DNA of 64,000 nt from Obrimoposthia wandeli (taxonomy: Eukaryota): assembly GCA_977020255.1 (NCBI GenBank), contig CDROCS010001239.1, positions 248,001-312,000 of the forward strand, given 5' to 3'. The notes under the pieces are model-generated. The model was given only the letters and a program-made list of their open reading frames with translations, made no database searches and had not been told where the DNA came from. A program made the position numbers and the translations under genes. Every line of letters starts with the position of its first letter. The stretch's first letter is position 1. This document shows positions 7,525-62,226 of the stretch, in pieces.

Positions 7525-7641
7525 GTCGAAGTTTTCAGATTTTATTATTTTTATTCAGATATTTATAAACAAATTTTTTTTTTTTATTTTTTGTTTGTTG
7601 GATCATTGATAAAAGGCTCATTTTCGGCACACGAAATTGCT

Positions 7642-7845: not shown

Positions 7846-7874
7846 TTTTTTTTTATTTTTTTTATTTTTTTATT

Positions 7875-8147: not shown

Positions 8148-8825
8148 TTCAACGAGGTACTTTCGATGGTACTTCCTGAATAAAAAATAAAAAATATATA
8201 ATAAAAATAAAATATATAATTTAAAAATAATAATAAAAAATACCTAATGAAGGCAATCCAAGTTGAGCTGGAATGAAGTCCTCTTCATTGACGAAATCCA
8301 TCCAGCTGTCGTCCGACATCTCGACGAAATCGGATTCCTCGATGGTCTCCAACCATGAGTTATCGCTCCACTGCTCTATCTCGAAATCTGACTGGGATAT
8401 GTCATTCATCCACTCATTGTTAGACATTTGAGTGGATAGGTCAGAATCAGGAGCCGGGAGACCAATCGCAGGACCGTAAAAGGGTTGATCGACTGCAACT
8501 GGAATTGGAGGTGGAGCGACCTGTGAATCGCGCACCAATTGCATGATATCCCTCTTCTTGTTGTTGGCCGTGAAACACGATAGATGAGCTCGATGTTCAC
8601 TGAAGAAGTCTCGAAACTCCTTCTCCTCCATTGTTATGCAGAAGGGGCAGACAAAGAAGTGAAGCCCGCGAGACTTTGTCCGGTAGTATGCAGACATTGT
8701 CTCCATGCAGGTCTCTCCTCCATGTGGAGCCGAAGCACCACAATACGCAGGGAATAGGTTACAAGTAATCTGAAATAATAAATATTAATAAGGAAATAAT
8801 AAAAATAAATTCTTACCATAGGCAT
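8141..8825 (-). CDS. Predicted 3-exon accessory gene (Cys/His N-terminus, acidic C-terminus)
   Basis: Exons 8825-8817, 8769-8244, 8175-8141. Introns 8770-8816 (47 nt, GTAAGA..TTTCAG) and 8176-8243 (68 nt). The first intron joins MPM in frame to ORF 8221-8706. Confidence 0.6.
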
Positions 8826-12241: not shown

Positions 12242-12452
12242 NNNNNNNNNNNNNNNNNNNNNNNNNNNNNNNNNNNNNNNNNNNNNNNNNNNNNNNNNNN
12301 NNNNNNNNNNNNNNNNNNNNNNNNNNNNNNNNNNNNNNNNNNNNNNNNNNNNNNNNNNNNNNNNNNNNNNNNNNNNNNNNNNNNNNNNNNNNNNNNNNNN
12401 NNNNNNNNNNNNNNNNNNNNNNNNNNNNNNNNNNNNNNNNNNNNNNNNNNNN
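12242..12452. other. Assembly gap
   Basis: Run of N. Confidence 1.
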
Positions 12453-19558: not shown

Positions 19559-20282
19559 ATATTATTCAGAAGAAAAAGGTTAAAGAAGTAAGAAAATACA
19601 TCCCATTTCTGATATTCAGAATAGCAATGTATTTTACAAAGGTAATAACGTATCAGATGAACACGAAAGCGTTGGTCTGTGAAGAAATCCTTAGTATTTG
19701 TCGGGGAACAAAAGCTAGCCGTGGATTCAAAGTCCAAGAAACATATCAAAAACAACTCCCAAACACAAAATTCAGTATGAAGATGTTGGGGTTTCTATAT
19801 GAAACTACTTTTGGAGTTTAGATGTAGATCCTCTGATGGAGGCTCCCAACGTGAGTTCTATAGAAGTAGGGCTTGCAGTTGTTTGTGGCCTACTTAAGTT
19901 GTGCTTACCTGTCTCAATGTCTAATCTGAAGGTTTGTTTTTGTTTGTTATTGTGGAGATGTGTGAAGAGCTGTGTATCCAGCACTGGAAATATTCCCTTA
20001 GTGTGGTGTAACGTATGGAGTATCTGGTAACTGCTTGGGCTCAAAGGTGTTAGAAACAACGTTGTTTAACTTGTAGGAAAACTTTATTATTGAAACACAC
20101 TAATTTACGTTTCTAAAAATGACAACAACTAAATCTAACTTCGCTTCACTAACCCTCACACAAATGGGGATGTCTTACGTATCGATTTTATAAATTCTTT
20201 AGTCGAACGTTTACTTCTTCTTATGATTTTATCGTACAATGTGGCGATTTTAAAGTCAAATTATTTTACTGATTCTCTTACC

Positions 20283-20525
20283 AGGATTCAAAATTATTTT
20301 ATTGAGATTCATACTTCTTATTTTTACTCAATCCTTTTACTATGATTCAAATTTATCTTATTGAGATTCAAACTTCTTATTTTTTACTCAATCTTTTTAC
20401 TAGGATTCAAAATTATTTTATTGAGATTCAAACTTCTTATTTTTACTCAATCCTTTTACTAGGATTCAAAATTATTTTATTGAGATTCAAACTTCTTATT
20501 TTTACTCAATCCTTTTAGTAGGATT
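20283..20525. repeat. ~61-bp tandem repeat, about 4 copies
   Basis: AGGATTCAAAATTATTTTATTGAGATTCAAACTTCTTATTTTTACTCAATCCTTTTACT repeated. Confidence 0.92.
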
Positions 20526-20616: not shown

Positions 20617-22261
20617 TGTTAGGTTTAGGTTTTTGAAATAAATTAAATAATTAATTGATTTTATAGTGAAATAGAAATCCTTGAAAGCAAGGTTAGAATT
20701 AAATAAATTTAATATCAAAATTAAAATTGATGAGATTTAAAATTATAATAAAATATTTAAGGATGAACCACGATCGAGGTCGTTAGTGTGATGCGTAAGT
20801 ATTTATAAAAGTTTAGGGCCCCAAGAATCTTAATGACAAAAAGTGAGTCAATTAACGAAGAGTATAGAATCGAATTATTGTAAAAGTGCAGCTGCTCGAC
20901 TGACGAAGAAAATTGCTCTAGAATCCTGCGAGAAATCCGTGAACCAATTACCAGCTGACAGCCGTCTCAACAATCTCGAGGTCAAAAATGCTAAACTAGA
21001 CGATAAAATAGCAATTGTTTCTTCCCAGATATCCCACATAACTAAGGAACAACTTTCAAATTTGATTGTCAAAATGTAGACTCAAAATACAATTGAATAT
21101 CAAATGGAATTACTGCAGAAAATCTAGTCAAAAGTAATTGCATTCACAGTGGGTTATTTAATACCTTTAAAGAAGAAGAATGGCTCAGAGTTTATCGCAA
21201 GGATGAGAATTTAAAACTTACTGAGAACTGAGATATTAAAACGAGAAACTGCAGCTGAGAACTGGAGATAGTTCCAGCTGGGTGTAAGCCAAGAAAAGTT
21301 GAGAACTGTTCAAGATTGACCGATCTGGATCGGTTATACAGAGACAATTAACTGATTCCAAGTACGCTGACAGGGAAATTGAGACTGAGCTGAATTTCGG
21401 GAGTAGTGCAAGATTTCGGCTGGAACGCGGGATCATAGCGTTGAGCGATCACTGATCGATGCACGAGAGTGATCGGCTGGCGCGGATCAGGAAATGATTG
21501 GACTAGGATCGCGACGTGGACGTTGAGAGTTCGGCTGGCGCGGAAAAGAAGTGCGATTGGCGCGGATGGCAGAGTTGTCTAGTTTCAGATGACTATTAAT
21601 TTTTAAAGTAATTTCTGAAGTGAACTGCGTTTTCAACATTGATTAGAAAAGTTTTTCCGCTGTTGGTGAACTGCGTTTTCTTCTTCTTCTGACAATTGAC
21701 TTAATTTTGAAGTGAACTTTTTCATACATTTGAGGCTAAAAAGTAAATTTTGAAGCTCTTGAAAGTCTGAGTTTTCATACATTGAAAATAAGTAAATTTT
21801 TCCTGAAGTGAACTGCGTTTTCATTTCATTGACTAGTAATTTCCAAGTTGAAATACTTATATCAATTTAACTGTGTCACAATTAGAGTAAAGACTCTAGC
21901 GACCGACTAACCTATATTAAAACTACACACGATTCGTGGTTCATCCCCACTTGTGTTTACAGAAGTCTTAATATTTTACTGTAACTTTTTAAAATACGTA
22001 CGTAATTTTCAACGTATTGCTTTCAAGTGATTAGTCTAGTGTTTAACAATAAACAATTTCTACAACTAGAAAGCATTTTCTAAACCCTTCAGATTAAGAG
22101 ACATCTAAATCAAACACCTTTTACTAGATAAGATTTATCTTGAGATTCAGGCAACTATAACATTAAGTAGACTCAATCCATTCTTAGTAGGACCTCTTTA
22201 ATATAGAACTCACGTAGGTCCACATTATCTATAAATTTCACCTACTAGAAGTACCCCAACA
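20617..22261 (+). mobile_element. LTR-like unit D nested in A
   Basis: TGTTAGG...CCCCAACA flanked by CTTC/CTTC. Confidence 0.75.
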
Positions 22262-27114: not shown

Positions 27115-27710
27115 ACAAACTGGTTTGGCCGCTTATATTGTATTCAGGGAGGTTTTCATTTACATAGGCTTAGGGCGCCAACCCTTATTGGCCATACGGG
27201 TCATTCGTCCGTCTAAATCTACGTCACTGTAGTCTGGCATATTGAAAGTTTCTTCGGATAGATTTGTTTGTACACATTCCCTAGAGATGGTTGATTTTAG
27301 AGTGCTAGAGCTTTCTTTTGATCATGTACTTCTTGCCATCCCCCGGAATCGTTGACGTATAGCGCTTCTTGTCTTGAGCTACTTCCAGCAGATAATATAT
27401 AACTCAGTCAACGCACTGCCGCTTGTCGGAACCAATAACGAACAATCATATACCCCAAGGTCAAGCCCAAGACAAGAAGCGCTATACGTCAACGATTCCG
27501 GGGGATGGCAAGAAGTTCTAGCACTCAAAAATCAACCATCTCTAGGGAATGCGTACAAACAAATCCTGTTCGAAGAAACTTTCAATATGCCAGACTACAG
27601 TGACGTAGATTTAGACGAACGAATGACCCGTATGGCCAATAAGGGTTGGCGCCCTATGACTATGTAAATGAAAACCTCCCTGAATACAATATAAGCGGCC
27701 AAAACAATTT
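27115..27710. repeat. Long palindrome (about 250-bp inverted arms, about 85-bp spacer)
   Basis: 27120-27378 is the reverse complement of 27462-27710, with few substitutions and one ~22-bp indel. Confidence 0.93.
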
Positions 27711-28172
27711 GCCTATTGGATCAATGGAGAGGACTGGAAGTGGAGTGTCGTAGACATCTGCCGACATTATTTTATGCATTTAATTATAAAATCTCTTCTA
27801 CAACAAAAAAATTATTCTCACAAAATTTCCTTTTCTGATTATTTTACACCAAATGTTCTTTCATTTTTGTTGCACGTCTGTATATTCAATTAGTAGATGA
27901 GTTAGATAATGGACGGTTAGAGTCACATTGAGGTAATCACTAAAATGTATATGGCTTCATTTGACTAATTTTAATATAAAAAATATAACTCTAATTAACT
28001 TTTACTTGGAAAATTAATTGTAAAATTAAAAAATAATTGTGTATCCTAACATAAAATGAAATAATCTTGTATTTTTCCGAATTATTTAAATAATCATTTT
28101 CAAAACTTCTACATAAACCCCATCAAGTAGCGCTATATCACATTCAGTTAGAGAGGGGGTATTTATGGATAC

Positions 28173-29610
28173 TGTTGGGGTTTCTAATGTAAAATGTTAG
28201 ATCCTCGTACGGAGGTTCCCAATATGAGTTCTGAAGCGATAGGGGTTAAAGATGAATGTGGTCTACATATTCTTACTTTACTTAGTTCTAGTCTCAAATA
28301 TTTTTTTAAATTTTGTCTTTGATGCTTGGTGTAAGGAGTTATGTTCAGAATAACTACACAGGAACCTTAAAACTAATGTGGTGTAGTGTATGGTAGTGTT
28401 AATTAGGCTGGTTTAAATTTTGATTTAAAAGGGTCAGGTTAAAACAGAGACCGAAATATACAGACCAGAGCCGGAACCAAGCGACACTAACGATGTTCCT
28501 CCGGTAATACCAGGGCTTAACAATCCGCTGAATACATCGGAAATCAAAGCACTGTCACGTGATAAGCACTCGGGTAGCCTATAGATTAGTGGGTCTGACT
28601 GTCTATGGTGCTTCACTCAATGACAAAATTCGTTTCCTTATCTAAATTACTATTTATTCTTATACACAACAAACTAATCAGATGCGACGTGACTAGTCTC
28701 GACACGTAGTAGGGTGACTCTAAAAATTACTTTGTCTTTTATAATATTTTGTCGAACGACTAACTTTTTTTACAATTACTTAAACACGACTTTTATCAAT
28801 ACTCTAAATATTTATCAAAAAAGTATTCTTTACTTTCTTTACGATTATACACAATTTATCAAACAAGTACTCTTTACTTTCTTTACGATTAGGACAATTT
28901 ATCAAACAAGTACACTTTACTTTCTTTACGATTAGGACAATTTATCAAACAAGTACACTTTACTTTCTTTACGATTAGGACAATTTATCAAACAAGTACA
29001 CTTTACTTTCTTTACGATTATACACAATTTCTCAAATATAATTTCTATAACTTTTCCTCACCAATTAAATCATTGTTACTATTCCTCTGCTTGAACTAAT
29101 AACAATCATCTAATTCCTGATCCTCCTTTGTAGCTGTTCATCTTTTGTCGATTTCTTGAAATTGATATCAATAGTCCTTTTCCTGATCCTCCTTTGCCGC
29201 TATTCCTCTTTTGTCTATTCTCGTCGTACTATTGTGTATGGTAAACAAAATCCAAAGCTTATTTATAGTTCTCACTTCTGGAATGCCGGATGTAGCCTTG
29301 CAGCCGATGTGATATCGATGCTGATCGATGATTTACCTGTTGTACTTTTGCTGTAAATTATCTAATTTCAGCTATTCTGAATTCAATGGAAATTATGTAT
29401 TTTCTGAGTTCTGATCTTCTATGGCCGTTTTTTCCACACTTTTCATGTATTTTATACTCATCTCTTACGACCTCTTCAAGGTCTCATTTATTTAATATAA
29501 CATATTTTAACATATTTTTATTTAATTTCCTAAATTAACTTTGACTTTCTAATGTAAAATTTATTTTTATAAATACACATTTTATTTTTTACAATTTTTA
29601 TAATCTAACA
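28173..29610 (-). mobile_element. LTR-like unit B
   Basis: + strand TGTTGGGG...AATCTAACA flanked by ATAC/ATAC. Confidence 0.78.
28790..29025. repeat. ~41-bp tandem repeat, about 5 copies
   Basis: ACAATTTATCAAACAAGTACACTTTACTTTCTTTACGATTAGG-type units. Confidence 0.92.
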
Positions 29611-30915: not shown

Positions 30916-31532
30916 TTGGGGATTTCTATTAAAACTTAAAATCCTCGAATGGAAGTTCCCAACGTGAGTTTTGTAGCGGTAGGGCTTACATATGAATGTG
31001 GCCTAACTGTTCTAATATCTGAAGATTTTTCTTAGTCTCTGAAGGTTAGTTGTGCTGTGTGAAGAGTCTGTGTCCAAGATAACGTGACGGTCCTTAAAAC
31101 TATTGTTGTATTATGTAGGCCGGTTAAGCCGAATTTTATTTTAAAAATGCTCTGGCAAAATCAATTTCAAAAAATATGCAAAATAAGCCAGTCAATCAGT
31201 GTCGACGATAACCCTCTGACTGTATCTGGGCTTAAGTTAGTATCCCACGTGGTTAGCTCATGGCTGGTCTATAGGTTAGTGGATTCAAGATTTCGTGAGG
31301 CTGGTTATTGTCAAAACACAATTCGTGATATAACTCTAAAATACTACTTTTATTATACACAATATTTTTTGCGTTTTATCTACACTTTTTTTATATACTC
31401 ATTCATATTCATTTTATAAAACATATTTTTAACTTTACTATTTTATTAAATCTTCGAATATTTTGAAAGTTAAGCAAATAAGCAAAAATAAGCAAATATT
31501 TTATTTCAATTTAGATTTTTCTTAATCTAACA
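30916..31532 (-). mobile_element. LTR-like unit C (short)
   Basis: TTGGGG...AATCTAACA flanked by CTAT/CTAT; shares the terminal module with A, B and D. Confidence 0.7.
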
Positions 31533-32589
31533 CTATAGGGATAAGAGAGTTATCTGAATAGATTGATTATAAATAAGACACTAATAAAAAACTGGATTAT
31601 TGAAGTTGATTGAGAAGATATATTTATTCTCCAAATTAGTACGTTGAGTGAAGTCTGATCAGCTTGATCTTTGCCATATGACCCTATTCACATGAAACCT
31701 TATTGATTTTCTGCTATCGATTATTAGTTTCATAACTTCATCAATATAATTCAAAGCAATGAAAGCATAGGTTTATATTTCTGCTATCTTGATAATCATG
31801 TTAACATATTTGCAAAGGATCAGCAAAACGATGAAAAAAATTAATTTGACCAAGTATATTAGAATAGGTTTTAGATATTACACGTTTAGCTTTTACAATA
31901 TCAATAGCAGTGGATAAAGACATTGATTGGTTCAAAACTAGCTAAGACAAGCTCAACTGAAGTTGAAACTCCATGACCGATAATTAAAACCTTCCCTCCA
32001 TTTTTGATTTTTCTTTTATTATTTGTTCAATTATTATAACTCATATAGGTTTCCCTAGTTCAGCTTTCAAATCAATATCTGTAGTTTTCAAAACTTCATC
32101 ATTAGGTTTAACTTTACTACGTTGAATAATAAAAGTAAAACATTTTTCAATCCATATTTATGGTTTGCATCTTTATAATTACCAATATAAAGAATCTAAA
32201 ATTTCACTCATCGGTGTATGTTTTTAATTCTTTTAAACTCTTTCATCTGTTCTTGAAAAGTTACATCCACCTTTTCCTGGTGCCACGATCCTTACATTTG
32301 GATGTACACTGTCCCCGTCCTCAAACGGCACTGTGAAGCATCCCTCCGCCAGACTTCGTCTATAGGCCTCCGCCAATGCTGGCTGAGGTAGTTTCTCGGA
32401 TCGTGCCTGTCATCCTCTAAAAACCTCCACATATTTTCCCTCAATTCGTTCCTTAAAACGTTCTCTGCGATTTAACTTTACTCTTACCATGTACTTCATC
32501 ATTTTACTATAACATCTATATAACATCATCTTACTACGTATTACAGTGGAAGAATTAACCACTGCTAACAAAATCAAATACTATGAACC

Positions 32590-33200
32590 CTTTTACTTTT
32601 TCATAACATAAATCCATAAATCGATACCAATTTTCTTTCTTTTCCTTTAGGTACTCTGGTCCTTCCCACCAAATTGTCTCATCAATCAATAGCTGTACAT
32701 CGACTCCCCGCGATAGTATATCTGCTGGATTTAGCTTCGTGGGCACATACATCCATAGCTTTATATCGGTATCTTGGATCATCCCACTCGGTTGGCTACA
32801 AAGGGGTTTAGTCTCTTCCCGGCTGGCGTATCCACCATAATACGTTCTTGCTGTCCGACCAAAATGTTGTTTTTACCTCCATTAAATTTAAGGCTTCTCA
32901 TATCGTTTGTGCTAACTTCACTCCAATCAGTGCAGCTATCAGCTCTAATCTGGGTACACTTTTTATTCTCACTGGGGCAACTCTACTATTAACTGCCATC
33001 AATCGCATCGCCTGTGTCTTCATTGCGCATGTATGCCATTACACCATACGCGGTTGTCAAGGCATCCACAAATACGTGTATTTCTTGCTGTTTCTCACTC
33101 GTTACCATCCACCTCGGAATCTTGATCTCTTTCAATCGCTTACAATCCGCTATCCATTGTACTATTCTCTTGAGTGCCGGGAATAAAACCAACGCGTAAA
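32590..33200 (-). pseudogene. BEL/Pao LTR retrotransposon RNase H region
   Basis: IPRW...IHVFVDA...AYG..AY.R and W.YVPTKLNPADILSRG...WWEGPEYL. Confidence 0.88.
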
Positions 33201-34402
33201 TTATTTAATTTAAATCCTTTATCAATTAGGGTATATTATAACGTTATTAATCAATTCTGCATTCATACCCAACAAATTGTTTCGGGATATCTGTCTACTA
33301 AAATTATTAATCTGTTATTTTCTACGACACATACCTTCAAAGCTGTTACTTTGCTCATTACTCAATGTTTTCATTCACATTTCTGTTTTCTGCATTATGT
33401 CTATTAAAGCATTCTTTTTCATCATGTTCAACATTCATTGACCCTTAAATAAAAATGTAAGGAATAAAGATATTAGAAAATATTTGATAAACTCATATCC
33501 GATAGGTTAGTGCTGTTTGTTTTAATTAATTAAGGAAGCCATAACAAACCTGGTTTTGAATGCGTGTGTAGGTTTAGAGTGTATTGAAAACGAAAGTAAT
33601 ACGATTTAAATGATATTCTCTCTGTGTCAGCTACATTTTTGGAAGGTGAAGCGTTTACATTCAACATCTATATTTTATCAATTAACCAATCATAATACGC
33701 TTATAAACTTTCAAGTGATTTAGATTTTTATTTATTTATAAACTAAGTATTATATAATTTTCTAAATTTAATTAAAGATAACTATCTACTTTTAAATATA
33801 AGTATTTTATAATTACCAAAAGTAACTTAGAAAGTGTTTTTCGTAAGTAGTGCATCTTTCCCTAAATAATATATTTTGAAAGCAAATGTTCTATGTTCTC
33901 TAATAACATGTGATCTAACCATCATCTCAATATTATCTCATAGTAATTTTTAGATTTCTATGAAACTTGATCCTCGACCGGAGTGAGTTATTTAGCGATA
34001 TTGGTTACAAGTGGACGTGGCCAACCTATTTCTAATTTACTGAAGTTTCGTCTTACTTTTACGGCTTCTTAATTTTCGAATCTTGTGCGCTTTTTTAAGA
34101 CTTTTGTTTCTTTTATATACATATAATTATAACCTTCTAAATTTACAATTTGCGAAACTGGCGATTTTGTATATTTAGCCGTCGCTTTATATATAAAACA
34201 GCCTCCAATCACATCACGCCTGGAATTGCTAGTGGCAGGCGAAAGAGTGATGTGATCGAAGGGCTTTAACATGAGATAAAAAGGGACAAAGTTGTCCAAA
34301 GATCAACTATAAAAACACCACACGCACAAAGAGGTTGCGTAAGACACAGATGTGCTTGCATCATATTTACAAAGCACACACAACAAAGTAACAGCACCGG
34401 GA

Positions 34403-35971
34403 TCAAGTCACTGCTTCATACGTCATATTTTGGAATGCGGAAATCCAATCTGCAATGTCCTCTTGTGATGAAAGGATGTCTCTTGCCGGATTTTGATCTG
34501 TAGTAATAAACTGGATGCTTAAGCATTTTGTGGTAACGAGGATCTGGATGGCTACGATGATCCACCATTCATCCATGCTGCTGGGAATGCGTTTTGTCCT
34601 TGCTGTCCAGACAAGTCCCTGGTTATCGCATAAGATTTTGCCTCCTTCCAAGGCCCTCCAGCATGCCCACAGTAACGCCTTCCCTTCCTGAATATAAATA
34701 TTAGCCATGGGTAGTTTAAGTGCCGTGATTATGGTTCGCTGAGGTCTCAAGCTCACTACTGCCATCGATTCTTGTCTGGCATCTGTAGCCCACAGCTCTG
34801 GTTCTTTAAACTTATCCCACTTCCAAGTTTTTGCTTGGGCTTTTAGGAGTTTGTAGCAATTTTGTCTGAGCCTTGGGATCATGTAATTTATAGCATATGG
34901 CCAGTGCAAAACGTGCGCCATGTAATTTGCGAAACCCAAACCTTGTTGGGAGAAATCATCTTTGGATATAATTTCATCCAATGTTTCCCATTTATCCTTA
35001 GATATACTAATTTCCTGTTTATTTAAGTCAATGTCCATACTACAGTAAGTGACTCTATGTGCCGGGATTAATTGCGATTTTTCCCAATTTATCTGGACAT
35101 TCCATTTCTGCATGTATGGCGTGAGATGTTCCCACATCGGGCTTTCTTTATCAGCGATATCGTCAATGTGAACGTGTGTCAGCGGAATGTTCCATCGCTT
35201 TTGAAATCTCTTCATGATATAGGACAGGGTCCACTGCAGAATGGCGGGACTTTGCCTCAGCCCCATTGGCCACCTTGTGAACAGGAAATACTGGTCTCGA
35301 TGCCAGACGTTTGTAAGATGACGTGAACGAATGTCAAGAGGAATCTGGTAAAAGGCTACTGTAAGGTCGATCCTTGCTGCTTTTAAACCTCTGGGCAACA
35401 GTTTTAATTTTTCTCCGAGATTTGGTATCCGCATGTGTAAATTTGGTAGTGAGCTCGTTAGGTGAGCAAAGTCTACAATCAAGCGTCTCAAGTTTGAGTT
35501 CTGTTTAGGTACGAGTCTGATTTGTGAACAGAAAGGACCTTTCTTTGATTTTTCCTCGATTCCTCTGGCGAAGAGGGCATCGACGCATGCATCTATGTGC
35601 TTTTGTTCCTCTGTGTCATAGATTTGTCGCTTGGGCTGCCTTGACGATCTTATTTTGGCAAACGGTGAATATCCTGTAGCAGCCAACGTGCACACCCGTG
35701 CGTCAAGGTCGACGCTGTCCTCGTCATCAACCGGAACTGTGAAGGTTCCCAAAGGGAGACTGAGCTCATAGGCTTCACGCGGCCCCGGCTGATGCGATTT
35801 CTGAGGTGCCACTTTCTTCTGTGCGTGGAAATTTAACCAGCCACTAGAGTCATTGATGATGGCTCTGATCGTTGCTTGTGAGTCGGTGTCACTGATAGGC
35901 GATGTTTGAGCGAAAATTGGTTTTGAGGCAATTGTTGATGTTGAGCGAAAAACTCTTCTACTGTAATTGCG
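34403..35971 (-). CDS. Reverse transcriptase-RNase H with hepadnavirus-like motifs (HEART-like); YxDD reads HIDD
   Basis: RLIVDF, PNL...LLP.G....DLTVAFYQIPL, PMGLRQSP, HIDD, QINWEKS...P, WATDA, IYIQE, CDNQ, NPA. The frame is open from 35971 without an ATG. Confidence 0.8.
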   Translation of the reverse strand, partial: RNYSRRVFRSTSTIASKPIFAQTSPISDTDSQATIRAIINDSSGWLNFHAQKKVAPQKSHQPGPREAYELSLPLGTFTVPVDDEDSVDLDARVCTLAATGYSPFAKIRSSRQPKRQIYDTEEQKHIDACVDALFARGIEEKSKKGPFCSQIRLVPKQNSNLRRLIVDFAHLTSSLPNLHMRIPNLGEKLKLLPRGLKAARIDLTVAFYQIPLDIRSRHLTNVWHRDQYFLFTRWPMGLRQSPAILQWTLSYIMKRFQKRWNIPLTHVHIDDIADKESPMWEHLTPYMQKWNVQINWEKSQLIPAHRVTYCSMDIDLNKQEISISKDKWETLDEIISKDDFSQQGLGFANYMAHVLHWPYAINYMIPRLRQNCYKLLKAQAKTWKWDKFKEPELWATDARQESMAVVSLRPQRTIITALKLPMANIYIQEGKALLWACWRALEGGKILCDNQGLVWTARTKRIPSSMDEWWIIVAIQILVTTKCLSIQFITTDQNPARDILSSQEDIADWISAFQNMTYEAVT

Positions 35972-35997
35972 CTAATTTGTGGCAGAGGAACGTTATA

Positions 35998-36176
35998 CAG
36001 TAATTATTCACCTGTAAGGGTATTCATTAAAACATGTTTTTGAGAGAGACCGACACCGAATCACTTATAGATGAATCACTTATAGATGTCACCGGGCACC
36101 CTTATAGGTGAAGCGTGGAATTTTCGGTGACCGGACACCTTTATAGGTGGGACCCCTTATAGGTGAATAATTACTG
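35998..36176. mobile_element. Tc1/mariner(pogo)-type MITE
   Basis: TIRs CAGTAATTATTCACCT(G/A)TAAGGG, flanked by TA/TA. Confidence 0.85.
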
Positions 36177-36242
36177 TACACGTCCGCAGACATTATTGTG
36201 ATTAGCATGTAATCACGCCACCATTTTAGATAGGTGGGGTCA

Positions 36243-36752
36243 CTATGGGAGGCCAGCTCCTCTAGCAATCGTCGTGCGTCCACGGCCTCTGCGCGAGTTG
36301 AAACCTCGACCCGGAAACCTCCCTCGCCCCCGCGCAGGGAAGGTACGTCGGGATTCATAGCGGCAGATTTCCTCTGGGGAAATATCATTAATTTTTGCCA
36401 GCTTGGATATTTTGGCTTCGGTGGTGGTCCATCCCACTCTTGTGGCGGTGTATAACATTCCCAGCCTGTTGGCGATTTGAAGCTGAGCTTCTTGCAATTC
36501 TCCATTTGCAATTTTGGAACTGAGATCGTAAAGGCACTCGGCCTCGTGCAAAGATCGTTTGTCCTTGTCGCCCAACACTCGGAGGGTATCTGTTTTGATG
36601 TCTGGTAAGAGCATCTGTAGCTTGGTGGGCGGTTCCTCATAGTCAGGGTATGTCGCAGCAGTAGCAGGAGGATTCTGACTCTGACATTGAACATCCATTT
36701 GTCGTAAGAGGTATAATATCTCTGCCAAAGCAGGGTCTTGTTGTTGGGCCAT
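36243..36752 (-). CDS. Core/gag-like protein with Arg-Gly-rich C-terminal tail
   Basis: 169 aa, helical body with RLGMLYTATRVGW (resembles the DIRS-type ORF1 motif), tail RGRGRFPGRGFNSRRGRGR; directly upstream of the RT. Confidence 0.65.
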   Translation of the reverse strand: MAQQQDPALAEILYLLRQMDVQCQSQNPPATAATYPDYEEPPTKLQMLLPDIKTDTLRVLGDKDKRSLHEAECLYDLSSKIANGELQEAQLQIANRLGMLYTATRVGWTTTEAKISKLAKINDISPEEICRYESRRTFPARGRGRFPGRGFNSRRGRGRTTIARGAGLP

Positions 36753-37599
36753 GAGACTAAAAGTCTGTCCACCACCTGCAAGATGTCCTCTATCGTCCGA
36801 TTTGCTTCGCGTAAAGTAGCCAGCCTTTTCCGTGCTTTCGTCCGATTCCAGGTCGACTGATGCAGGGCTGTTGGTACTTATTTATTTCACAACACACCCC
36901 TTTAATTTGTTTACAACATATATATATATATATATTTAACCTTTACTATCTAAAGTTAACTTCCCACTATAAATATATGTATTATTTATTTTTATTTAAT
37001 TCTCCTTAATCTAACAGTAACATTATTTTTTATTTCATAAAATTTGTTTTTTCTTAAATTTTCCAACAAAGAAATCGTCATTTTCTTCTTAATTATCAGT
37101 GTATTACTAATTTAAAAAATTATCAATTAAAGTGGGTTGTTTATAGTTTAGAGAAAATATGTAAGAAAATATATTTTGTAACATTAATTCAATGGTGTAT
37201 TGATAATTCAAATTTCTCAATCCCAATATCATTACTTTACCACTGAAAAATATTTTTACTGAGCGGTGTAAACTTCAAATAGTTGAGTGCTGGGAAAATT
37301 TTTGCTTCAAACATGCATTCTTTCATTTTTTGTTTCCGTCAATTTTATAGAGATTTATTGATTTTCCGATATTGCCTAAACTGCGATTGATAATTAAATA
37401 AAAACTAACTTGAAGGACAAATAACAACTGTAAAATCATCAAACCTTTACACCTATTAACTCGGCTTACATTCATTGAATATTAAATGGGAAATATCATT
37501 TTCTATTCTTCCAATGTAATTTTATATTTACGAGTTTTATCAAACTAAAATAGTTTTTTTGTAATTTTTATATATGTATGCCGGAAAGTGGTTGAGTTG

Positions 37600-38990
37600 C
37601 TATTGGTCTATAACCCACGTAAAATCCCCTGTCGGCAAAAATTAACATCACCAACAGCATCCACACGGTGTTCGTTGACAAATGTCATGCCACTCCTGAT
37701 TCCCCCGCAAAAGAGATGGTACATCTCGGTATCCTGCACCAACACAACCGTAGATTTAGTAGCGCCAGCAGTTATGTCAGGCCGTAGCAGCGACTTGAAA
37801 GCCGATGCAAATGTAAGTCCTGGGAGAGAAATAAATAAGGAAAAATTTAACTAAATATAAAGAAAAATTTACTTAGTTAAAATTAATACCTGAAGAAATT
37901 ACTTTAAAGAGAATAATAATAAATATTTCATATCAAGAAGAAGTTGAGCCACTCCAATCCATCATCAGAGATCGCCTTTTTCTGGAAAACCGTGATTATA
38001 CGTTAAGCTTGAGATACACCAATATGTAGTCCCAAAGTGGCTGACACCCAGTCTTGATTCAAGCGCGCTGTGCAACCAAGTGGGCAGTAGGTTTGATGTT
38101 ATTATTCCAAATCGGCGAGAAGCTTGTAATTGCTCGAAGAGAAGTCTCTGAGATTGCCATTATATATGGGAAGAGACCCCTGCATTTTGCCAGATGAGGA
38201 GAAAATATTGCTGATGTTATTGGAGTTAAAGGCACATTCTCAACGAGTTTCTCCAGACTGTTGTTGAGAAATTGTAGTGAGTCGATGAATCTCATAGACT
38301 ATCGATATACACCATCAGAGACATGAATTTATCACTGGATTGCGAAATCAAAGTGCAGTCCCAATGCAAAAACCGGCTCAAGGCATGTTTCATGATATTA
38401 TGCATATCGTAGCCCCACAGTTGTGGAAAATAACTGGGAGACTACGACTCAACCGCCTACTGAGGTTACACTTGAAATGATCCACACCGAGAAACTCCCC
38501 CGTCATATGATCATGGTCACGTACCATTTTCGCGACTCGCTTCTTACACAAATAGCAGACTATAGCTGAGTTGAAGCTAACAATATATGCTGGCATAAGT
38601 GGGCGCATAACTTCGGCGGCATGGTTCCGATACCAAGGGAGCACGATCTCCTTCACCAGCTGCTCCAGTTTCTTCAAAATCTCGACAACACAAGACTCAT
38701 CAGTAAAAGTAGAGTACTCGTGCTAGAAAATGTAGGAATCCGCTAAGTCAGGAGAGAACAGCATACCCGCCATAATTGGAAGGTGAATTTGATGGTGAAT
38801 CCTGTGCGGTGGTAGTACTGCTTCGAAGTCGGCGTAGACAGCAAACGAAGGATAAATTGTCTAGCTGAAGTCTGTGAATTCACAGTACTTGTCTATAGGC
38901 ATCTGGTACAGAGTTGTATGCTCTGTATTCGAAGTGCAGAGGGGCGCATGCTTATTGAACGCCTCCACTCGTCGGAATGTGTGTATAAGT
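37600..38990 (-). pseudogene. pPolB remnant of a different, GC-richer Maverick family
   Basis: FAVYADFEA, RDHDHMTG...CNL, LPVIFHN, RFIDSLQFL..SLEKLV, G.FPY, EMY.LF..GIRSG. Confidence 0.85.
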
Positions 38991-39990: not shown

Positions 39991-40794
39991 TCAGTGTACA
40001 CCTTTCTTGCTTTTTACCTTGATGGTAGCTGTACATAGTTGGGAGAGCGGGTCGTGTTTCGGCTCCAAATCAGCTCAGTTCTGAGTACGTGGAATTCAGC
40101 GATAACGCTGTTTTGAGGTGTAAGTTAGTTCGGGACGGTGTGTTGATTAGCAGCAGTCGTGATTTGGTTGTCTGCGGATTTGTGGAGGCCAATTTTGGCG
40201 AGTGTAAGAAGTGACTACATTCCACTAGTTGCGGTCTGCTGAGTCTCACTTCCTATTGACAGTTGCAATGCTCCGAGAGTTCGATTCGGAAAGATGAAAA
40301 TAGGTGGGACTCATAGAGTGGAGCAAACCGAAGCGACGATAACCGGTAGGGCTTGGTCCGCTTCGGTTCACTCTAATCTGATACCGCGCCGAATTTAGAA
40401 TCACAATAAAAAGTTGGTCGATTTGTATTGACATTTATATCAATTGTCTGATGGCAACATAATTGGCCAATTAATTGAGCTATCTTCCTCTCTTCTGTGT
40501 TTTGATTTGGATTGCGGGGCTTGATGGAGCTTCCTGTGATTAGGATATAAGCAGTGGAATGTTTGCATAATTGCGGACTACATTTGACTGATATTGGAGC
40601 ATTATTTAAAAAGTTAATTCATCTCGATCATTCTAAATTAAAATGTACGATATTCAGTTTTATAGTTCTATTTCTTTTAGTTTTAATTTTTTCAAATATT
40701 TAATCATAAAATGATATAATCCTACAATCTACAGTAATTATTTTAGAAATATAAACTGTAAATAAAATTAAGCAGATTATATTTAAAACGTTAA

Positions 40795-41125
40795 AATCTT
40801 TCATCTCTTCTTGAAAAGTTACATCCACCTTTTCCTGGGGCCACGATCCTTGTTTGGATGCACGCTGTCCCCGTCCTCAAACGGCACTGTGAAGCATCCC
40901 TCCGCCAGACTTCGTCTATAGGCCTCCGCCAATGCTGGCTGAAGTAGTTTCTCGGATCGTGCCTGTCATCCTCTAAAAACCTCCACATATTTTCCCTCAA
41001 TTCGTGCGATTTAACTTTACTCTTACCATGTACTTCATCATTTTACTATAACATCATCTTACTACGTATTACAGTGGAAGAATTAACCACTGCTAACAAA
41101 ATCAAATACTATGAACCCTTTTACT
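40795..41125. repeat. Duplicated block matching about 32240-32620
   Basis: Near-identical GC-richer segment with small indels. Confidence 0.88.
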
Positions 41126-41892
41126 TTTAATTTACTTATCGTTTTCAGCTTATACGTCAAGGCTAATATTTGAAAATTGTGGGCCATGAAACGACGGCAA
41201 GGGGCGGGCAATAAAAATAGCAAAAAAGGCCCAACCTCCAGCAGCGACTTGTCCATGACAAAGCAGTGGAATGTTTGCATAATTGCGGACTACATTTGAC
41301 TGATATTGGAGCATTATTTAAAAAGTTAATTCATCTCAATCATCATATTACGCTTCAATTGCCTAATAACGTGATTCCCTTTCCAGGTTTCCACTTATCT
41401 TTTGCAATATTAAATATATGTTTAAGAGTCTTTTTTAAGAATTGCATGAGATTTATCATATCTCCTCTAACTCAAGTAAATTTAAAATTACATTTTTATA
41501 AAATATGCCATAATTGTTGAAGATGTCCAAAAAGCCTTTCAGAAAATAATTCCGGTGATGTATAAATTCTGAGATATTTTTACATACATAAATTTGTTTT
41601 TAAAGCATATCGTTGTCAATATGTCTTTTGAAAAATAATTAGTTTTTTAAAGATATTTTCTATATGCTATTAAAATATTTAAATTAATTTGATTGGTTGA
41701 AATTTTAGAAATATATAAATTTGATACTTTAAAACTTCTGGTTCTAACTTTTTAATTTTTATTTCTAAATCTTCATCTTCATCTGTAGTTTTAAGATAAT
41801 CGGTTTGTATTCTTTGAGCTTGTGCTTTCAAATCCTCAGTAAAAGTAAAGTTAGAATAAAACTGTTTTGTTTAAAATCATACGGGCTACTAT

Positions 41893-48912: not shown

Positions 48913-50730
48913 AGTAAGTGGATGTGTTCGGTCTAATCCACACCCCCTCCCCCCGGGGGGCTACAACTGTCATTTAAAACCATGCATATGTGTGGAGTGA
49001 AATTTCGTGCATGTGTGTGAAGTGAAATTTTCTGACATATTTAATTCTAAGGGAGTAACTGTTTATAAACAAATAGAGAACAATCATAAAAGATAAATTT
49101 ATAATGCCTTTTAAGAAGTTGATAGTAAAACGTAAAGCAAAGCTTAAGAAATAAAAAAAAATCATTAAGAAAAAAGAAGTGAAAAAATTATTTAAATCTG
49201 TAGTTAGAAATAAAAAAAAACTTAAATGGGTTCGAATATAAACAATATTTAAATTGAACCTTTTTTATTAAAATGAAGAAAATACAAAGAAGCATACGCT
49301 ATTTTAAAGCTTTAGTCAAAGCCTCTTCTCATAAGAGAATGATTATTCTTAAAGCATTTTCATCTTTTGTTGTAGATGAGTTATTGGAAGTTTTGTATAA
49401 TATAGTTTTGGGTCGAGTAAAAGTTGGAAATCGGAAAAATAAAGAAAAACTCTTCTAGATATTGCTAATGTAAAAGTAAAAAAGGAAACGAAATATTATT
49501 CTTAAACATAATGGTGGTTTCATAGGGGCTGTTATTCCAGTTGTTGCTTCAATTATCAGTAGTATTATAGCTGCGACACGTTCATAAACAATTATTTATA
49601 AAATCAGTTAAAGATATGGGTTCTAACCCTTCTTTACCTAAATTTAAATTATCTTTCTATTCAAATTGTTGTAATGGAGAAGATATGGTTCAATCCAAAT
49701 GATCCAATTGGCTACACCGGAGTTTCAAAATTAGCAAAAAGAACAAAACAAAAATACAAGAAAACGCAGAAATGGTTGAGCAACCTGTTAGCCTAAAGTC
49801 TGAACAAGCCGATAAGAGGAAGGTTTCCAACTAGAGCTTACAAAACCAGCGGTCCTAATAATTTATGGCACATGGATTTGATGGAGATGATCCCATATTC
49901 TTCCATTAATAAGGGATATCGATTTATTTTAACATGTATTGATGTATTTAGCAGGTTTGCTCGTGCAATTCCCGTTATAGCAAAGTCTTCAAAAGCTATG
50001 CTTGAAGCCATTAAAGAAATATTAAAATATGACATTCCACAAAATGTGCAAACTGATTTAAGAAAAGAATTTTATAATAAACAAGTTAAATCATTATTTA
50101 AACAAAATAATATAAATCACTACTCTGTGTTTTCACAATACAAAGCAGCAGTAGTAAAAATATTTAATCGTACTTTAAGAGATCGAATAAAAAGGTATTT
50201 CACAAAAGAAGGAAATAAAAAATGGATCCAAGTTTTACCTAATATAATACATGCATATAATCACTCGGAACATAGAGGTCTCAAGGTAATGAGACCTGTT
50301 GATGTTACTAATAAAAATTCTATGGATATTTGGATGAACAGGAATAAAAAAGAAAATATTAAAAAAGCTAAATATAAGAATAACGAATATGTCCGAATTT
50401 CGAAAATTAGCTCTACTCCATTTATTAAAAACTTTGATCAGAATTGGAGCGATGAAATATTTTGTATAAATAAAATTGATCAAAAGAGTAATCCAATAAT
50501 GTATACTATTATAGATGCTGACAATAATATCGTTCACGGTAAATTTTACGAGCAAGAACTACAATTAATATCAAATAAACCTAGCGTTTTCCGTATTCAA
50601 AATATATTAAAATCTAAGGGTGCCGGTAAACATAAACAATAATATGTTAAATGGCATGGTTATTCAGACCCAACTTGGATATCAGCATCTAATATAATAT
50701 GAAGTCTATGTATATGGTGTTACCTAGTAA
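48913..50730 (+). mobile_element. Maverick copy 2: left terminus fused directly to the integrase block
   Basis: Terminus 48913-49036, then 49037-50730 nearly identical to 57942-59635. Confidence 0.9.
49674..50702 (+). pseudogene. Integrase-chromodomain pseudogene
   Basis: Same lesions as copy 3: early TAA, VERFN changed to VKIFN (catalytic Glu lost), TAA before the chromodomain. Confidence 0.9.
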
Positions 50731-57351: not shown

Positions 57352-58001
57352 CAATGGAGCTAAATAATAATGCTGTATTTCAAATAGTTGGTCCCAGTGG
57401 AAGTGGAAAGACACATTTCGTATGTAAATTGTTGCAAAATGAATCTCTTTTCAAATGTAGTTTCTAAAATATTTATTGGCATTATGGTGGAGGAGGGGAA
57501 AGCGGATTAACCAAAACAGAAGTTTGCAGGTTGAAGGGAATACAATTTATTGAAGGATTTGATGCAAATTGGTGTGAAAGATTGAAAAAAGAAGATGTAA
57601 TAATATTTTATGATTTGTATCAGGAAGCTAACAAGGAATCGGACTTTAATAATTTATTTACAAAGATTGCAAGACATCGTGAAGTAACAGTTATATTTAT
57701 CACTCAAAATCTTTTTCACCAAGGAGGTCACCATAGAACAAGAAATCTTGATGTACATTATTTAGTTTTGTTTAAAAATCCTAGAGATCAAAAAGTTGTA
57801 GATTTTGTGGCCAGACAGGCATTTCCCCAAAATAAGAACTTTCTAGTTAATTCATTCCACGATGCTGCTAAACAAGCACATGGGTATATATTTATTGACT
57901 TTACACAAGCTTGCCCAGATGATTTACGTGTTTTAACCGATATATTTAATTCTAAGGGAGTAACTGTTTATAAACAAATAGAGAACAATCATAAAAGATA
58001 A
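57352..58001 (+). pseudogene. FtsK/A32-like packaging ATPase
   Basis: Walker A GPSGSGKT, FTKIARH, ITQNLF, RTRNL...Y.VLFKNPRD; one in-frame TAA near 57465. Confidence 0.92.
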
Positions 58002-58578
58002 ATTTATAATGCCTTTTAAGAAGTTGATAGTAAAACGTAAAGCAAAGCTTAAGAAATAAAAAAAAATCATTAAGAAAAAAGAAGTGAAAAAATTATTTAA
58101 ATCTGTAGTTAGAAATAAAAAAAAACTTAAATGGGTTCGAATATAAACAATATTTAAATTGAACCTTTTTTATTAAAATGAAGAAAATACAAAGAAGCAT
58201 ACGCTATTTTAAAGCTTTAGTCAAAGCCTCTTCTCATAAGAGAATGATTATTCTTAAAGCATTTTCATCTTTTGTTGTAGATGAGTTATTGGAAGTTTTG
58301 TATAATATAGTTTTGGGTCGAGTAAAAGTTGGAAATCGGAAAAATAAAGAAAAACTCTTCTAGATATTGCTAATGTAAAAGTAAAAAAGGAAACGAAATA
58401 TTATTCTTAAACATAATGGTGGTTTCATAGGGGCTGTTATTCCAGTTGTTGCTTCAATTATCAGTAGTATTATAGCTGCGACACGTTCATAAACAATTAT
58501 TTATAAAATCAGTTAAAGATATGGGTTCTAACCCTTCTTTACCTAAATTTAAATTATCTTTCTATTCAAATTGTTGTA

Positions 58579-59607
58579 ATGGAGAAGATATGGTTCAATC
58601 CAAATGATCCAATTGGCTACACCGGAGTTTCAAAATTAGCAAAAAGAACAAAACAAAAATACAAGAAAACGCAGAAATGGTTGAGCAACCTGTTAGCCTA
58701 AAGTCTGAACAAGCCGATAAGAGGAAGGTTTCCAACTAGAGCTTACAAAACCAGCGGTCCTAATAATTTATGGCACATGGATTTGATGGAGATGATCCCA
58801 TATTCTTCCATTAATAAGGGATATCGATTTATTTTAACATGTATTGATGTATTTAGCAGGTTTGCTCGTGCAATTCCCGTTATAGCAAAGTCTTCAAAAG
58901 CTATGCTTGAAGCCATTAAAGAAATATTAAAATATGACATTCCACAAAATGTGCAAACTGATTTAAGAAAAGAATTTTATAATAAACAAGTTAAATCATT
59001 ATTTAAACAAAATAATATAAATCACTACTCTGTGTTTTCACAATACAAAGCAGCAGTAGTAAAAATATTTAATCGTACTTTAAGAGATCGAATAAAAAGG
59101 TATTTCACAAAAGAAGGAAATAAAAAATGGATCCAAGTTTTACCTAATATAATACATGCATATAATCACTCGGAACATAGAGGTCTCAAGGTAATGAGAC
59201 CTGTTGATGTTACTAATAAAAATTCTATGGATATTTGGATGAACAGGAATAAAAAAGAAAATATTAAAAAAGCTAAATATAAGAATAACGAATATGTCCG
59301 AATTTCGAAAATTAGCTCTACTCCATTTATTAAAAACTTTGATCAGAATTGGAGCGATGAAATATTTTGTATAAGTAAAATTGATCAAAAGAGTAATCCA
59401 ATAATGTATACTATTATAGATGCTGACAATAATATCGTTCACGGTAAATTTTACGAGCAAGAACTACAATTAATATCAAATAAACCTAGCGTTTTCCGTA
59501 TTCAAAATATATTAAAATCTAAGGGTGCCGGTAAACATAAACAATAATATGTTAAATGGCATGGTTATTCAGACCCAACTTGGATATCAGCATCTAATAT
59601 AATATGA
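58579..59607 (+). pseudogene. Integrase-chromodomain pseudogene
   Basis: Homologous to 832-1855; stops present and catalytic Glu lost. Confidence 0.9.
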
Positions 59608-60625
59608 AGTCTATGTATATGGTGTTACCTAGTAACGGATACCCGAAGATTCAACCAGATAATGACGCTAGTAGCTTTATTATCGATTGGGAAAATCCTA
59701 TAAATCTCCAAGGAGAATGAGAAGCGGCTTTAACAGAATTTTCTTTTTATTATTCTCCAATTACTATTAGAAAAAAATCACATATTTCGTTTCCAAAAAC
59801 AACTGAAGTTCTGATCGGGTTTGATATTAAAGGACAATTCTATTACAATTGTATAGATAAAGAAGAGAAAGTAATATTTGAAAATAACAAAGTCAGATTT
59901 CAAAATCGATTAAAATATCTTCAAGTTATTAAAATTAACTTTGAATCTAAAAAAGAAGCTCTTTAAATCAGTTTTGATAGTGAACAAACCGTAGCTCGTA
60001 ATAAACGGGATATTGTCTCATCTAAATCGGTTAGAAATGTTCCTGGTAGAGTAGCAAAAGTGTTGTTACTTGAAACGTGACCAAAGACTGTAGTGGAACT
60101 GAAAAGGTTTTCAAAAGATTAAAAAATAGATAGTGAAGTGGATTTATGTAAATTAATACAGAAGGAATGTAGTGAATATTTCGATAAATGTGTAACATTA
60201 AATGGTAAATTAACGTTTACGGTAAAGAGCAACATAAAATGGGTTTCATTTGATGATAAACTCGCTAAAAATCTCGGTTTAAACAGAAATACCTTTGAAA
60301 CTCATACAATAAAAATCATAAAAGCTAAAAATAAGGCTAAACGTTTTAATGATTTTAATCATTTCTATATTTATACTAATTTAATATAACCAACGATTGT
60401 AGGAGGACAACGAGTTCCACTTTTGAGAACAATATGGATATCTCAAAATGAAACTAAAGATGGGGACGTTGTCGGTATGCGTATAGATCAACCAATGTAT
60501 CTTCCAGTTGCTCTCCTTTCTATAAACAATATTGAAGTAAATATTAGAGATGATTCTGGATAACTAATAGATTTCACATACGGGGCCAAGACAAGTTTAA
60601 CAATACATTTAAGAAAACAAAATAG
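59604..60625 (+). pseudogene. Minor capsid (penton-like) protein
   Basis: Homologous to 1852-2835; retains the VGGQRVPLLR segment deleted in copy 1. Confidence 0.75.
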
Positions 60626-60995
60626 CGAATCCGGCAATAATTGAAGCTTATAGTCAAAGCCAACAAGGTGGAGAATTACCATATTTTGTTGGTAAACAAT
60701 ATGGATCTGGCTGGCTTAGAACATTATGTAGATTTTCCTTTCCTCTTTTAAAGAGACTCGGGCGGTTTATACCAAAATTAGGAAAGGATTACTTTTCATC
60801 TAATGACAATAAACTAATACCAACTTTTAAGAATCATGCACTTGATGAACTTGATAATGTTTTACCTGAAGTTGCTAATTTGATTAGAAAACGTAAATCA
60901 AATAAAAGCAAAGAAGGTAGGGGATTTAAACGTAAAAATAAGCATAAAAGTCATATAAACAAACGTAAGAAAGTTGAGGGAACAAAATTTGCAAA

Positions 60996-62225: not shown

Positions 62226-62226
62226 A

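Follow-up and report, generated by a model that had tools for sequence, protein, structure and literature searches.

A hepadnavirus-like element between long terminal repeat-type arms in the genome of Obrimoposthia wandeli

Hepadnaviruses are thought to descend from retroelements of invertebrates, and few such elements have been described. We analyzed 64,000 nucleotides of the genome of Obrimoposthia wandeli (assembly GCA_977020255.1, contig CDROCS010001239.1, positions 248,001 to 312,000 of the forward strand), a stretch that we call the window and in which positions are counted from the first letter. It contains a unit of 3.07 kb, unit E (33947-37016, minus strand), which consists of two arms of the long terminal repeat (LTR) type and, between them, a cassette of ~2.79 kb (34112-36900) with a capsid-like gene and a polymerase-like gene. 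The sequence comparisons place the reverse transcriptase (RT) as well as the RNase H encoded by the latter with the polymerases of the hepadnavirus type and not with those of Gypsy or DIRS elements. In the explanation that we prefer, the cassette would represent a hepadnavirus-like retroelement of HEART or proto-nackednavirus grade, present as an endogenous and nearly complete copy that is nested in a solo-LTR-type unit already in place; we see the chances of this nesting as evenly balanced.

The bounds of unit E are given by the alignment of its ends with three other units of the window, termed B, C and D, and by flanking copies of the 4-bp target-site duplication GTAA, which are read directly from the sequence on the left (33943-33946) and on the right (37017-37020). 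Both genes of the unit are on the minus strand. In their sense, the 5' arm (36901-37016) is AT-rich, with a G+C content of only 0.16, and its end reads ...TAATCTAACA on the plus strand; the 3' arm (33947-34111), which is common to units B, C and D, has a G+C content of 0.35. The cassette is the stretch between the two arm homologies. It comprises, in this order, a leader, open reading frame 1 (ORF1), the polymerase-like gene and a stretch of 3' noncoding sequence in which a hairpin and a TATA-like motif are found. Its G+C content varies between 0.38 and 0.51, as compared with 0.33-0.34 in the flanks, and the border between the 5' arm and the adjoining 5' leader is a sharp boundary in composition (0.16 versus 0.50). 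The ORF list and Pfam provided no integrase, protease, tyrosine recombinase or methyltransferase in unit E, its 3' noncoding part included, and no tyrosine recombinase in its flanks. Terminal direct or inverted repeats of the unit or of the cassette did not exceed shuffled controls, no split repeats were seen, and Rfam and tRNA scans of the window found nothing. This architecture agrees with a first-pass annotation of the same DNA, made from the sequence alone, which had described a capsid-like ORF followed by an RT-RNase H gene, end segments alignable with units B and C, a GTAA/GTAA duplication and no integrase or recombinase. The size of 2.85 kb that it gave for the cassette is slightly too large, and the left arm can also be aligned with unit D.

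The affinity of the RT-RNase H was analyzed by an exhaustive HMMER search of 1.84 billion protein representatives, which returned 2700 matches at E<=1e-3. Because only one of these matches, a protein labeled P0001 with 34% identity, reaches E<=1e-30, the window protein appears as a lone and deep lineage. The matches that follow P0001 are unnamed proteins of 500-725 amino acids, which have the RT in their second half and are mostly encoded on contigs of 2-4 kb. When the 20 top matches were scanned singly, 8 of them exceeded the curated cut-off of PF00336, the C-terminal, RNase H-containing domain of hepadnaviral polymerases; Ty3-type RNase H or integrase domains occurred in none of the 20. Other searches added little. 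A word-index protein search with the RT-RNase H frame gave no match, a metagenome scan found only distant RTs with 22-31% identity, and a scan of viral contigs found none. Look-ups of the relatives in protein clusters gave no informative name, and none of the sequence identifiers in the supplement of PMC12691608 matches the relatives found here.

A neighbour-joining tree of the RT core, constructed from 139 proteins and ~235 columns, shows the window protein beside P0001 and inside a clade of 72 tips. PF00336 was detected in 16/71 clade members, RT_RNaseH, rve and Dam in 0/71. The reverse is true for the 60 proteins outside the clade: 28-29 carry RT_RNaseH, 13-14 carry integrase domains and 6 carry Dam, and PF00336 is found in none of them. 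With profile hidden Markov models, the window protein scored 255 bits for the PF00336-positive set, compared with 114 for the Gypsy-type and 119 for the DIRS1-type set. A split between the Gypsy-type RTs on one side and the PF00336-positive proteins plus the window protein on the other was recovered in 299 of 300 bootstrap replicates; the window protein fell with the Gypsy-type RTs in at most 1/300. After five Dam-bearing DIRS1-type proteins had been added, it was placed on the PF00336 side in 158 of 300 replicates and joined the DIRS1-type proteins in 3, and the DIRS1-type RTs grouped without it in 295. The DIRS side of these trees is DIRS1-type only, with Ngaro and PAT not labeled. A diagnostic column of the alignment points in the same direction. 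It contains N in all 67 proteins outside the clade (67/67) and T in the window protein as well as in 41/71 clade members. The Ixodes HEART rows, as far as they are printed in the supplement of PMC12691608, read HLT at this column. The Pfam labels, the model scores, the bootstraps and this column all bear out the earlier view that the RT-RNase H is hepadnavirus-like rather than Gypsy- or DIRS-like. Nesting within ordinary Gypsy or DIRS clades, which the first-pass annotation had named as the outcome that would speak against it, was not seen for the Gypsy-type or DIRS1-type RTs in these Pfam-labeled trees, and its choice of HEART as the group for comparison, to be taken together with the proto-nackednaviruses, was the right one.

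A different origin of the cassette, as a truncated DIRS/Ngaro-type retroelement with a tyrosine recombinase or as a pol fragment of a Gypsy or BEL element, has to be considered at this point. In searches of solved structures, the best matches were RTs of Ty3, of cauliflower mosaic virus and of foamy viruses or retroviruses. They come first because no hepadnaviral polymerase was returned among the solved structures, and the fold comparison does not discriminate between RT families. DIRS-like motifs had also been noticed by the earlier reader in ORF1 and in the N-terminal part, and we found no support for them. The other evidence is not in favor of such an origin. Recombinase, methyltransferase, protease and integrase are all missing, as are split or inverted terminal repeats, and the RNase H region can be aligned only with PF00336-type relatives. 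In the bootstraps, the DIRS1-type RTs cluster without the window protein and the Gypsy-type RTs hardly ever attract it; furthermore, the N that is diagnostic of Ortervirales and DIRS-type RTs is replaced by T. We therefore regard an origin from DIRS, Gypsy or BEL elements as highly improbable.

The polymerase (P)-like gene extends over 34403-36781 on the minus strand. Its upstream part, which seems to overlap all of ORF1 in another frame, is followed by the RT and the RNase H, and the gene is broken at one place by a nested insertion. The RT domain with fingers, palm and thumb (34967-35710, minus strand) is recognized by Pfam RVT_1 (E 5.3e-10), aligns with P0001-P0020 and is modeled with a predicted local distance difference test score (pLDDT) of ~90. 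The RNase H domain (34433-34795, minus strand) aligns with the PF00336-matching part of P0009, P0016, P0020, P0021 and others; the region can be aligned over its full length with relatives that score above the curated cut-off of PF00336 (25-52 bits versus 22.4). Both domains sit in an open frame of 522 codons, the structure model of which has a mean pLDDT of 79.9. The catalytic residues are conserved, namely the Asp of motif A and the Asp-Asp of motif C in the RT and the D, E, D and D columns of the RNase H. The active-site motif reads H-x-D-D in 45/71 members of the clade and Y-x-D-D in 24/71. The histidine of H-x-D-D was also considered as a decay mutation in the window protein; this is ruled out, since the same residue is present in those 45 relatives. 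The protein motifs that the first-pass annotation had listed for the window are all present in the translation. The viral letters that it had set beside them were not used here; the likeness was judged by the searches described above.

The +1 frame of ORF1 has no stop over its whole length, which was not reproduced in any of 5000 codon shuffles (p<2e-4), and this open frame and the RT-RNase H frame share one absolute phase. The polymerase gene hence probably began upstream and overlapped the capsid-like gene completely. In this respect it is unlike its nearest relatives, in which the two genes are arranged in series or barely overlap (L001, L003, L005, L007). The upstream part of the gene is open and has no detectable homologue. 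The N-terminal region, in which a terminal protein would be expected, cannot be aligned between the relatives or with the window protein, and the model is disordered there. The gene is thus longer than the polymerase ORF of the first-pass annotation, with a frame that stays open across ORF1, and it is interrupted once by a foldback insertion of ~0.18 kb. This insertion has 25-bp inverted ends that start with CAGT, is flanked by TA on both sides and folds at -91 kcal/mol (z -5.9). By its look it would be a miniature element of the Tc1/mariner type, and it may have been mobile; a second copy was not found in the window. Neither part of the polymerase-like gene contains further stops or frameshifts. 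Because the nested insertion interrupts the gene, this copy of unit E is no longer autonomous.

ORF1 (36243-36752, minus strand) is intact from ATG to stop. It starts ~150 nt past the sharp composition boundary at the 5' arm and comprises 169 codons; the ORF1 extent in the first-pass annotation has to be corrected to this ATG-started frame. The protein is predicted to be all-alpha with a C-terminal tail rich in Arg and Gly. It is homologous to the ORF1 that lies upstream of the polymerase gene in the relatives L001 (E 1.6e-9) and L003 (E 7.5e-9), and weakly so to that of L007, a relative with a PF00336-positive polymerase. The ORF1 proteins of the window, L001, L003 and L007 all have basic tails. 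Pfam gave no match for ORF1, and a word-index protein search with the ORF1 alignment returned only the L003 protein that was already known. The structure model is of low confidence (pLDDT 52.8), and a fold search with it found nothing below E=1. The homology nevertheless marks ORF1 as a conserved partner gene of the polymerase. Its position and make-up, including the size, the all-helical prediction and the Arg-rich tail, suggest that it may encode a capsid and nucleic-acid-binding protein.

The closest relatives are found on contigs of 2.2-3.8 kb, and their gene plan is the same, the polymerase gene coming after an ORF1 of 155-295 codons. In L005 the end of the contig repeats its own start (311-373 versus 3698-3760, 63 nt, 100% identity), which indicates a circular or tandem unit of 3387 bp with an ORF1 of 295 aa and a polymerase of 725 aa. 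The size of this unit is that reported for proto-nackednaviruses (PMC12691608). In L002 a perfect direct repeat of 87 bp (5481-5567 and 7996-8082) surrounds ORF1 and the polymerase gene; a TATA box is located ~35 bp before the second repeat copy, and the repeat itself contains AATAAA. This arrangement corresponds to that of a DNA copy made from a terminally redundant transcript. The end of the L002 contig also forms a perfect foldback of 454 bp (7441-7894 versus 8092-8545), perhaps an artefact of the assembly. In longer contigs, other relatives occur in an integrated state, amid debris of BEL/Pao elements and integrase genes or in plain sequence, and are not accompanied by a recombinase gene. 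Since flanking repeats are missing from three of these integrated relatives (L004, L037 and L038), arms of the LTR type are not a trait of the group.

The 3' noncoding part of the cassette contains a hairpin and a TATA-like motif (together 34178-34262, minus strand). The hairpin (34202-34262) folds at -39.7 kcal/mol (z -4.7) and is located before, not after, the TATA-like motif (34178-34190). The TATA box of L002 occupies an equivalent place, past the polymerase gene and ahead of the terminal repeat. Direct repeats of the DR1/DR2 kind or a terminal redundancy did not exceed shuffled controls in the cassette or in unit E, and a bulged hairpin of the epsilon type could not be shown.

Next we consider the arms. 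The left ~165 bp of unit E (33947-34111) align with the starts of units C (30917-31090), B (28173-28345) and D (19784-19960) with an identity of 64-78% (blastn E 7e-10 and 2.5e-7). On the right, unit E finishes in the exact 10-mer TAATCTAACA, as do unit B (29601-29610) and unit C (31523-31532); ahead of it, an AT-rich stretch of ~100 bp can likewise be aligned among all three. Two of the three aligned sister units begin with TGTTGGGGTTTCTA. At the left terminus, unit E reads TTTTTAG where units B and D read TGTTGGGG. The TG...CA ends proposed in the first-pass annotation are thus real for the family, and unit E itself has kept the CA end but not the TG. A consensus RNA fold of the arm shared with B, C and D (33947-34111) revealed no conserved structure.

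The sister units, all on the minus strand, differ mainly in what lies between their ends. Unit C (30917-31532) has the same ends and its own duplication, CTAT/CTAT. It aligns with unit B over nearly the whole length, and the basic unit is therefore ~0.6 kb long. Unit B (28173-29610, 1.44 kb) runs on the plus strand from TGTTGGGG to TAATCTAACA, is flanked by ATAC/ATAC and contains no cassette; relative to C it has 0.9 kb of extra interior, which includes a tandem array with a period of 43 bp (~6 copies, 28764-29063). Unit D (19784-19960) is a further copy of the arm, starts with TGTTGGGGTTTCTA and has an undefined far end. It is followed by tandem repeats of 59/119 bp (20222-20518) and, at ~20617-20715, by a short inverted piece that resembles the right-hand arm (...CCTAACA on the minus strand) and suggests another, truncated unit. 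Unit E has only the two arms in common with B and C, and its 2.79-kb cassette stands where they have their interior. Within the family, it is exactly at the position of the cassette that the length varies, with 0.1 kb in unit C, 0.9 kb in unit B and 2.8 kb in unit E. No trace of the cassette was found inside units B and C.

The LTR-type ends and the 4-bp duplication that had been described for unit E are real, and they are common to other units with duplications of their own. The presence of three units that share their ends and are each flanked by a separate 4-bp duplication is the signature of insertions made by an integrase; for isolated units of this type, solo LTRs are the simplest interpretation. 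A full-length LTR element bounded by two such units was not found in the 64-kb window. Like solo LTRs of Gypsy or BEL/Pao elements, the outer unit belongs to a family with TG...CA-type ends and 4-bp duplications, with several independent copies and a variable interior that includes tandem repeats. It differs from them in that it holds 2.8 kb of foreign coding sequence and that its TG end has decayed. Because B and C combine the same ends with separate 4-bp duplications and lack the cassette, the ends of unit E and its GTAA are more simply explained by a host unit of the solo-LTR type. It is most likely the repeat, and not the hepadnavirus-like element, to which these ends belong.

In the explanation that we prefer, the outer unit would have come first. 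The LTR element's own integrase would have made it, with the TG...CA ends of the family and the GTAA duplication. The cassette would have followed by a non-homologous insertion into this unit, in which ~0.3 kb of the interior was lost or replaced. By analogy with the relatives, RNA transcribed from the element's own promoter would have been copied inside particles built from the ORF1 protein. Entry into the chromosome would not have been self-encoded, as the cassette carries no integration enzyme. This nested insertion is favored because the integrated relatives have no such arms and because the cassette lacks the terminal repeats that replication of the LTR type needs.

Several observations weigh against this explanation. 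As regards the polymerase, PF00336 itself gave no match to the window protein at E<=1, and the bootstrap support for the exact clades in the large tree is low. The labels in the trees are Pfam matches of unnamed environmental proteins, and no named hepadnavirus, nackednavirus or HEART sequence was included. In a fold search against viral models, polymerases of caulimovirids and foamy viruses ranked above protein P of hepatitis B virus (rank 14, E 3.9e-18). As regards the nesting, the 5' arm contains a TATA-like stretch, and the genes of the cassette run in its direction. The cassette is also located exactly where B and C vary most, and a composite mobile unit would look alike. Furthermore, ~0.3 kb of unit C are absent from unit E, although a simple nested insertion should leave its host unit otherwise whole. 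Finally, the window contains no cassette-free unit with closely matching arms, and it is for this reason that we only infer the order of events.

These points lead to an alternative in which the 3.07-kb whole would move as one composite unit. The cassette would provide the capsid-like protein and the RT, and the arms would provide a promoter and the ends for an integrase that is supplied in trans by a resident Gypsy or BEL element. In favor of this alternative, a perfect 4-bp duplication lies flush with the arms, and units B and C have the same ends with duplications of their own. The genes are in sense with the 5' arm, with the start of ORF1 shortly after the composition boundary, and the interior of the family varies at the site of the cassette. 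Integrase-bearing elements are present in the same window, and the mobilization of HEART elements is described as unresolved (PMC12440569). However, the 64 kb contain a single copy of the cassette, with no other to compare, and this copy has no terminal direct repeats, which reverse transcription of the LTR type requires to produce a linear DNA ready for the integrase. Integrated relatives elsewhere are without such arms, B and C contain no trace of the cassette, and isolated TG...CA units with 4-bp duplications are, as said, most simply solo LTRs. We consider such a composite unit possible but doubtful. The corollary that B and C are members of the same family without cargo or with other cargo is doubtful to the same degree. 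As a working design, this alternative would describe a hepadnavirus-like retroelement with LTR-type ends that is inserted by the integrase of a resident LTR retrotransposon, with B and C belonging to the same hitch-hiking family; we put this forward as a tentative and rather unlikely scheme. If true, it would be a concrete answer to the question of how elements of the HEART type enter the chromosome, which is called unresolved in PMC12440569, and it would represent an intermediate between LTR elements and hepadnavirus-like genomes.

It is also conceivable that the cassette was captured into the LTR of a retrotransposon and copied as a part of this LTR, in which case the locus would be a solo LTR left after recombination. 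The ends and the duplication fit this scenario equally well, and variation and additional sequence are a known feature of LTR interiors, as seen in unit B with its 43-bp array. On the other hand, capture requires a retrotransposon with two 3-kb LTRs that each bear an RT, and no such element was seen. The window contains no internal region with matching LTRs, and C and E are not one pair, as their duplications differ. We judge LTR capture to be improbable. Borrowing of an integrase and capture inside an LTR were the two possibilities offered by the first-pass annotation. This window leaves them inseparable, and a host unit of the solo-LTR type is the simpler account of the ends.

The surroundings of unit E are rich in other repeats. 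Between units C and E are the decayed remains of a BEL/Pao pol gene (32266-33192, minus strand) with a protease (32992-33192; Pfam Peptidase_A17, E 6.4e-8) and the beginning of an RT (32266-32397; E 1.7e-4 in a tblastn search with the RT fingers region). These BEL/Pao remains indicate an animal as the host. A pairing of units E and C as the LTRs of a single BEL/Pao element that encloses the protease remnant was also considered; this is ruled out by their different 4-bp duplications (GTAA versus CTAT). A repeat of 368 bp with 90% identity (32233-32600 and 40791-41128), a part of which translates like the start of an RT, marks decayed BEL/Pao elements together with the Pao protease remnant. An inverted repeat at 27116-27261 and 27566-27711 has arms of 146 nt with 95% identity, 304 nt between them and a weak protein-level likeness to RT fingers. 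Weak RT-fingers matches at 27.2-27.7, 32.3 and 40.9 kb were rejected as further copies of the cassette, since they reflect the generic RT similarity of other decayed elements.

A block of ~5.8 kb is present at both ends of the window (1-5815 and 57454-63676, 89-95% identity), and a third, partial copy is located at 49043-50730. This block contains an ORF with a match to an integrase core (49872-50642 and 58777-59547; rve, E 4e-7). The window also includes a long microsatellite of the (TGGTTGT)n type (7589-7895), a run of 211 N (12242-12452), which is a gap or a masked stretch, and an ORF of 95 codons on the minus strand (38393-38677), for which the match to recombination endonuclease VII is weak (E 2.4e-4) and does not reach the curated cut-off.

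Among the known systems, the closest are the HEART elements and the proto-nackednaviruses, which the cassette resembles in its RT, its gene plan, its size and the absence of an integration enzyme. The HEART elements were reportedly described by Gong and Han in 2018 (cited in PMC12691608 and PMC12440569) as hepadnavirus-like retroelements of arthropod genomes. Like these, unit E is integrated in a chromosome of the invertebrate type, has an RT on the hepadnavirus side and is devoid of an integrase; the G+C content of the host genome is ~31-33%. The window protein shares the HLT after the second RT block with the Ixodes HEART rows of the PMC12691608 supplement. The rows printed there have a degenerate motif C, whereas unit E keeps the Asp-Asp.

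The proto-nackednaviruses include the Pliego and Toolik viruses and the rotifer-associated RMPV and RTPV (PMC11551314, PMC12691608). Unit E resembles them in being a genome-sized unit of ~3 kb with a core-like ORF followed by an RT-RNase H polymerase and with neither an envelope gene nor an integrase. The TATA-like motif past the polymerase gene is a further likeness, as is the fact that the relatives are carried on contigs of 2.5-3.8 kb, of which one is circular or tandem. In contrast to these viruses, unit E lies in a chromosome, has host repeats on its flanks and is interrupted by a nested insertion. DR1/DR2, terminal redundancy and an epsilon-like bulged hairpin were not detected in it, and the identity of its protein to the nearest library protein is only 34%.

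The endogenous hepadnaviral elements of vertebrates, for example eAHBV-FRY of birds (PMC11551314, PMC12691608), are likewise genomes similar to those of reverse-transcribing DNA viruses that became fixed in a chromosome without an integration enzyme of their own. They are clear members of the Hepadnaviridae, whereas unit E branches far outside this family and is located in an AT-rich genome of the invertebrate type, inside a unit of the LTR type with a clean 4-bp duplication. DIRS1, Ngaro and PAT elements share with unit E the order of a gag-like ORF1 and an RT-RNase H gene and the lack of a protease and a DDE integrase. They differ from it by their tyrosine recombinase, methyltransferase and split or inverted repeats; unit E has a target duplication instead, and its RT does not group with the DIRS1-type RTs. 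From LTR retrotransposons (Gypsy, BEL/Pao) unit E is distinguished by the lack of a terminal direct repeat, a protease and an integrase and by an RNase H that is not of the RT_RNaseH type.

With its overlapping frames and no integrase, the 2.79-kb cassette has the form of a compact genome of ~3 kb. The virus forms exist as episomal circular DNA, and this copy is located in a chromosome between host repeats. Because it is chromosomal and contains a nested insertion, it has to be seen as an endogenous copy or a retroelement and not as a virus genome. We would class it as a new and deeply branching member of the hepadnavirus-like retroelements of the HEART or proto-nackednavirus kind, from an AT-rich animal genome.

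The element adds a very divergent lineage, with no more than 34% identity to anything among the 1.84 billion proteins. Both of its genes are preserved with all catalytic residues in place, and a polymerase frame that extends over the whole capsid-like gene is a virus-like economy of coding. Moreover, the search brought up a large unnamed set of environmental contigs of 2-4 kb that share the two-gene plan and the H-x-D-D motif. How retroelements of the HEART type enter the chromosome is said to be unresolved (PMC12440569). If the LTR-type ends of unit E prove to be the element's own, they would have a direct bearing on this question of integration; if they do not, the locus would be a clean example of an endogenous hepadnavirus-like element nested in an LTR.

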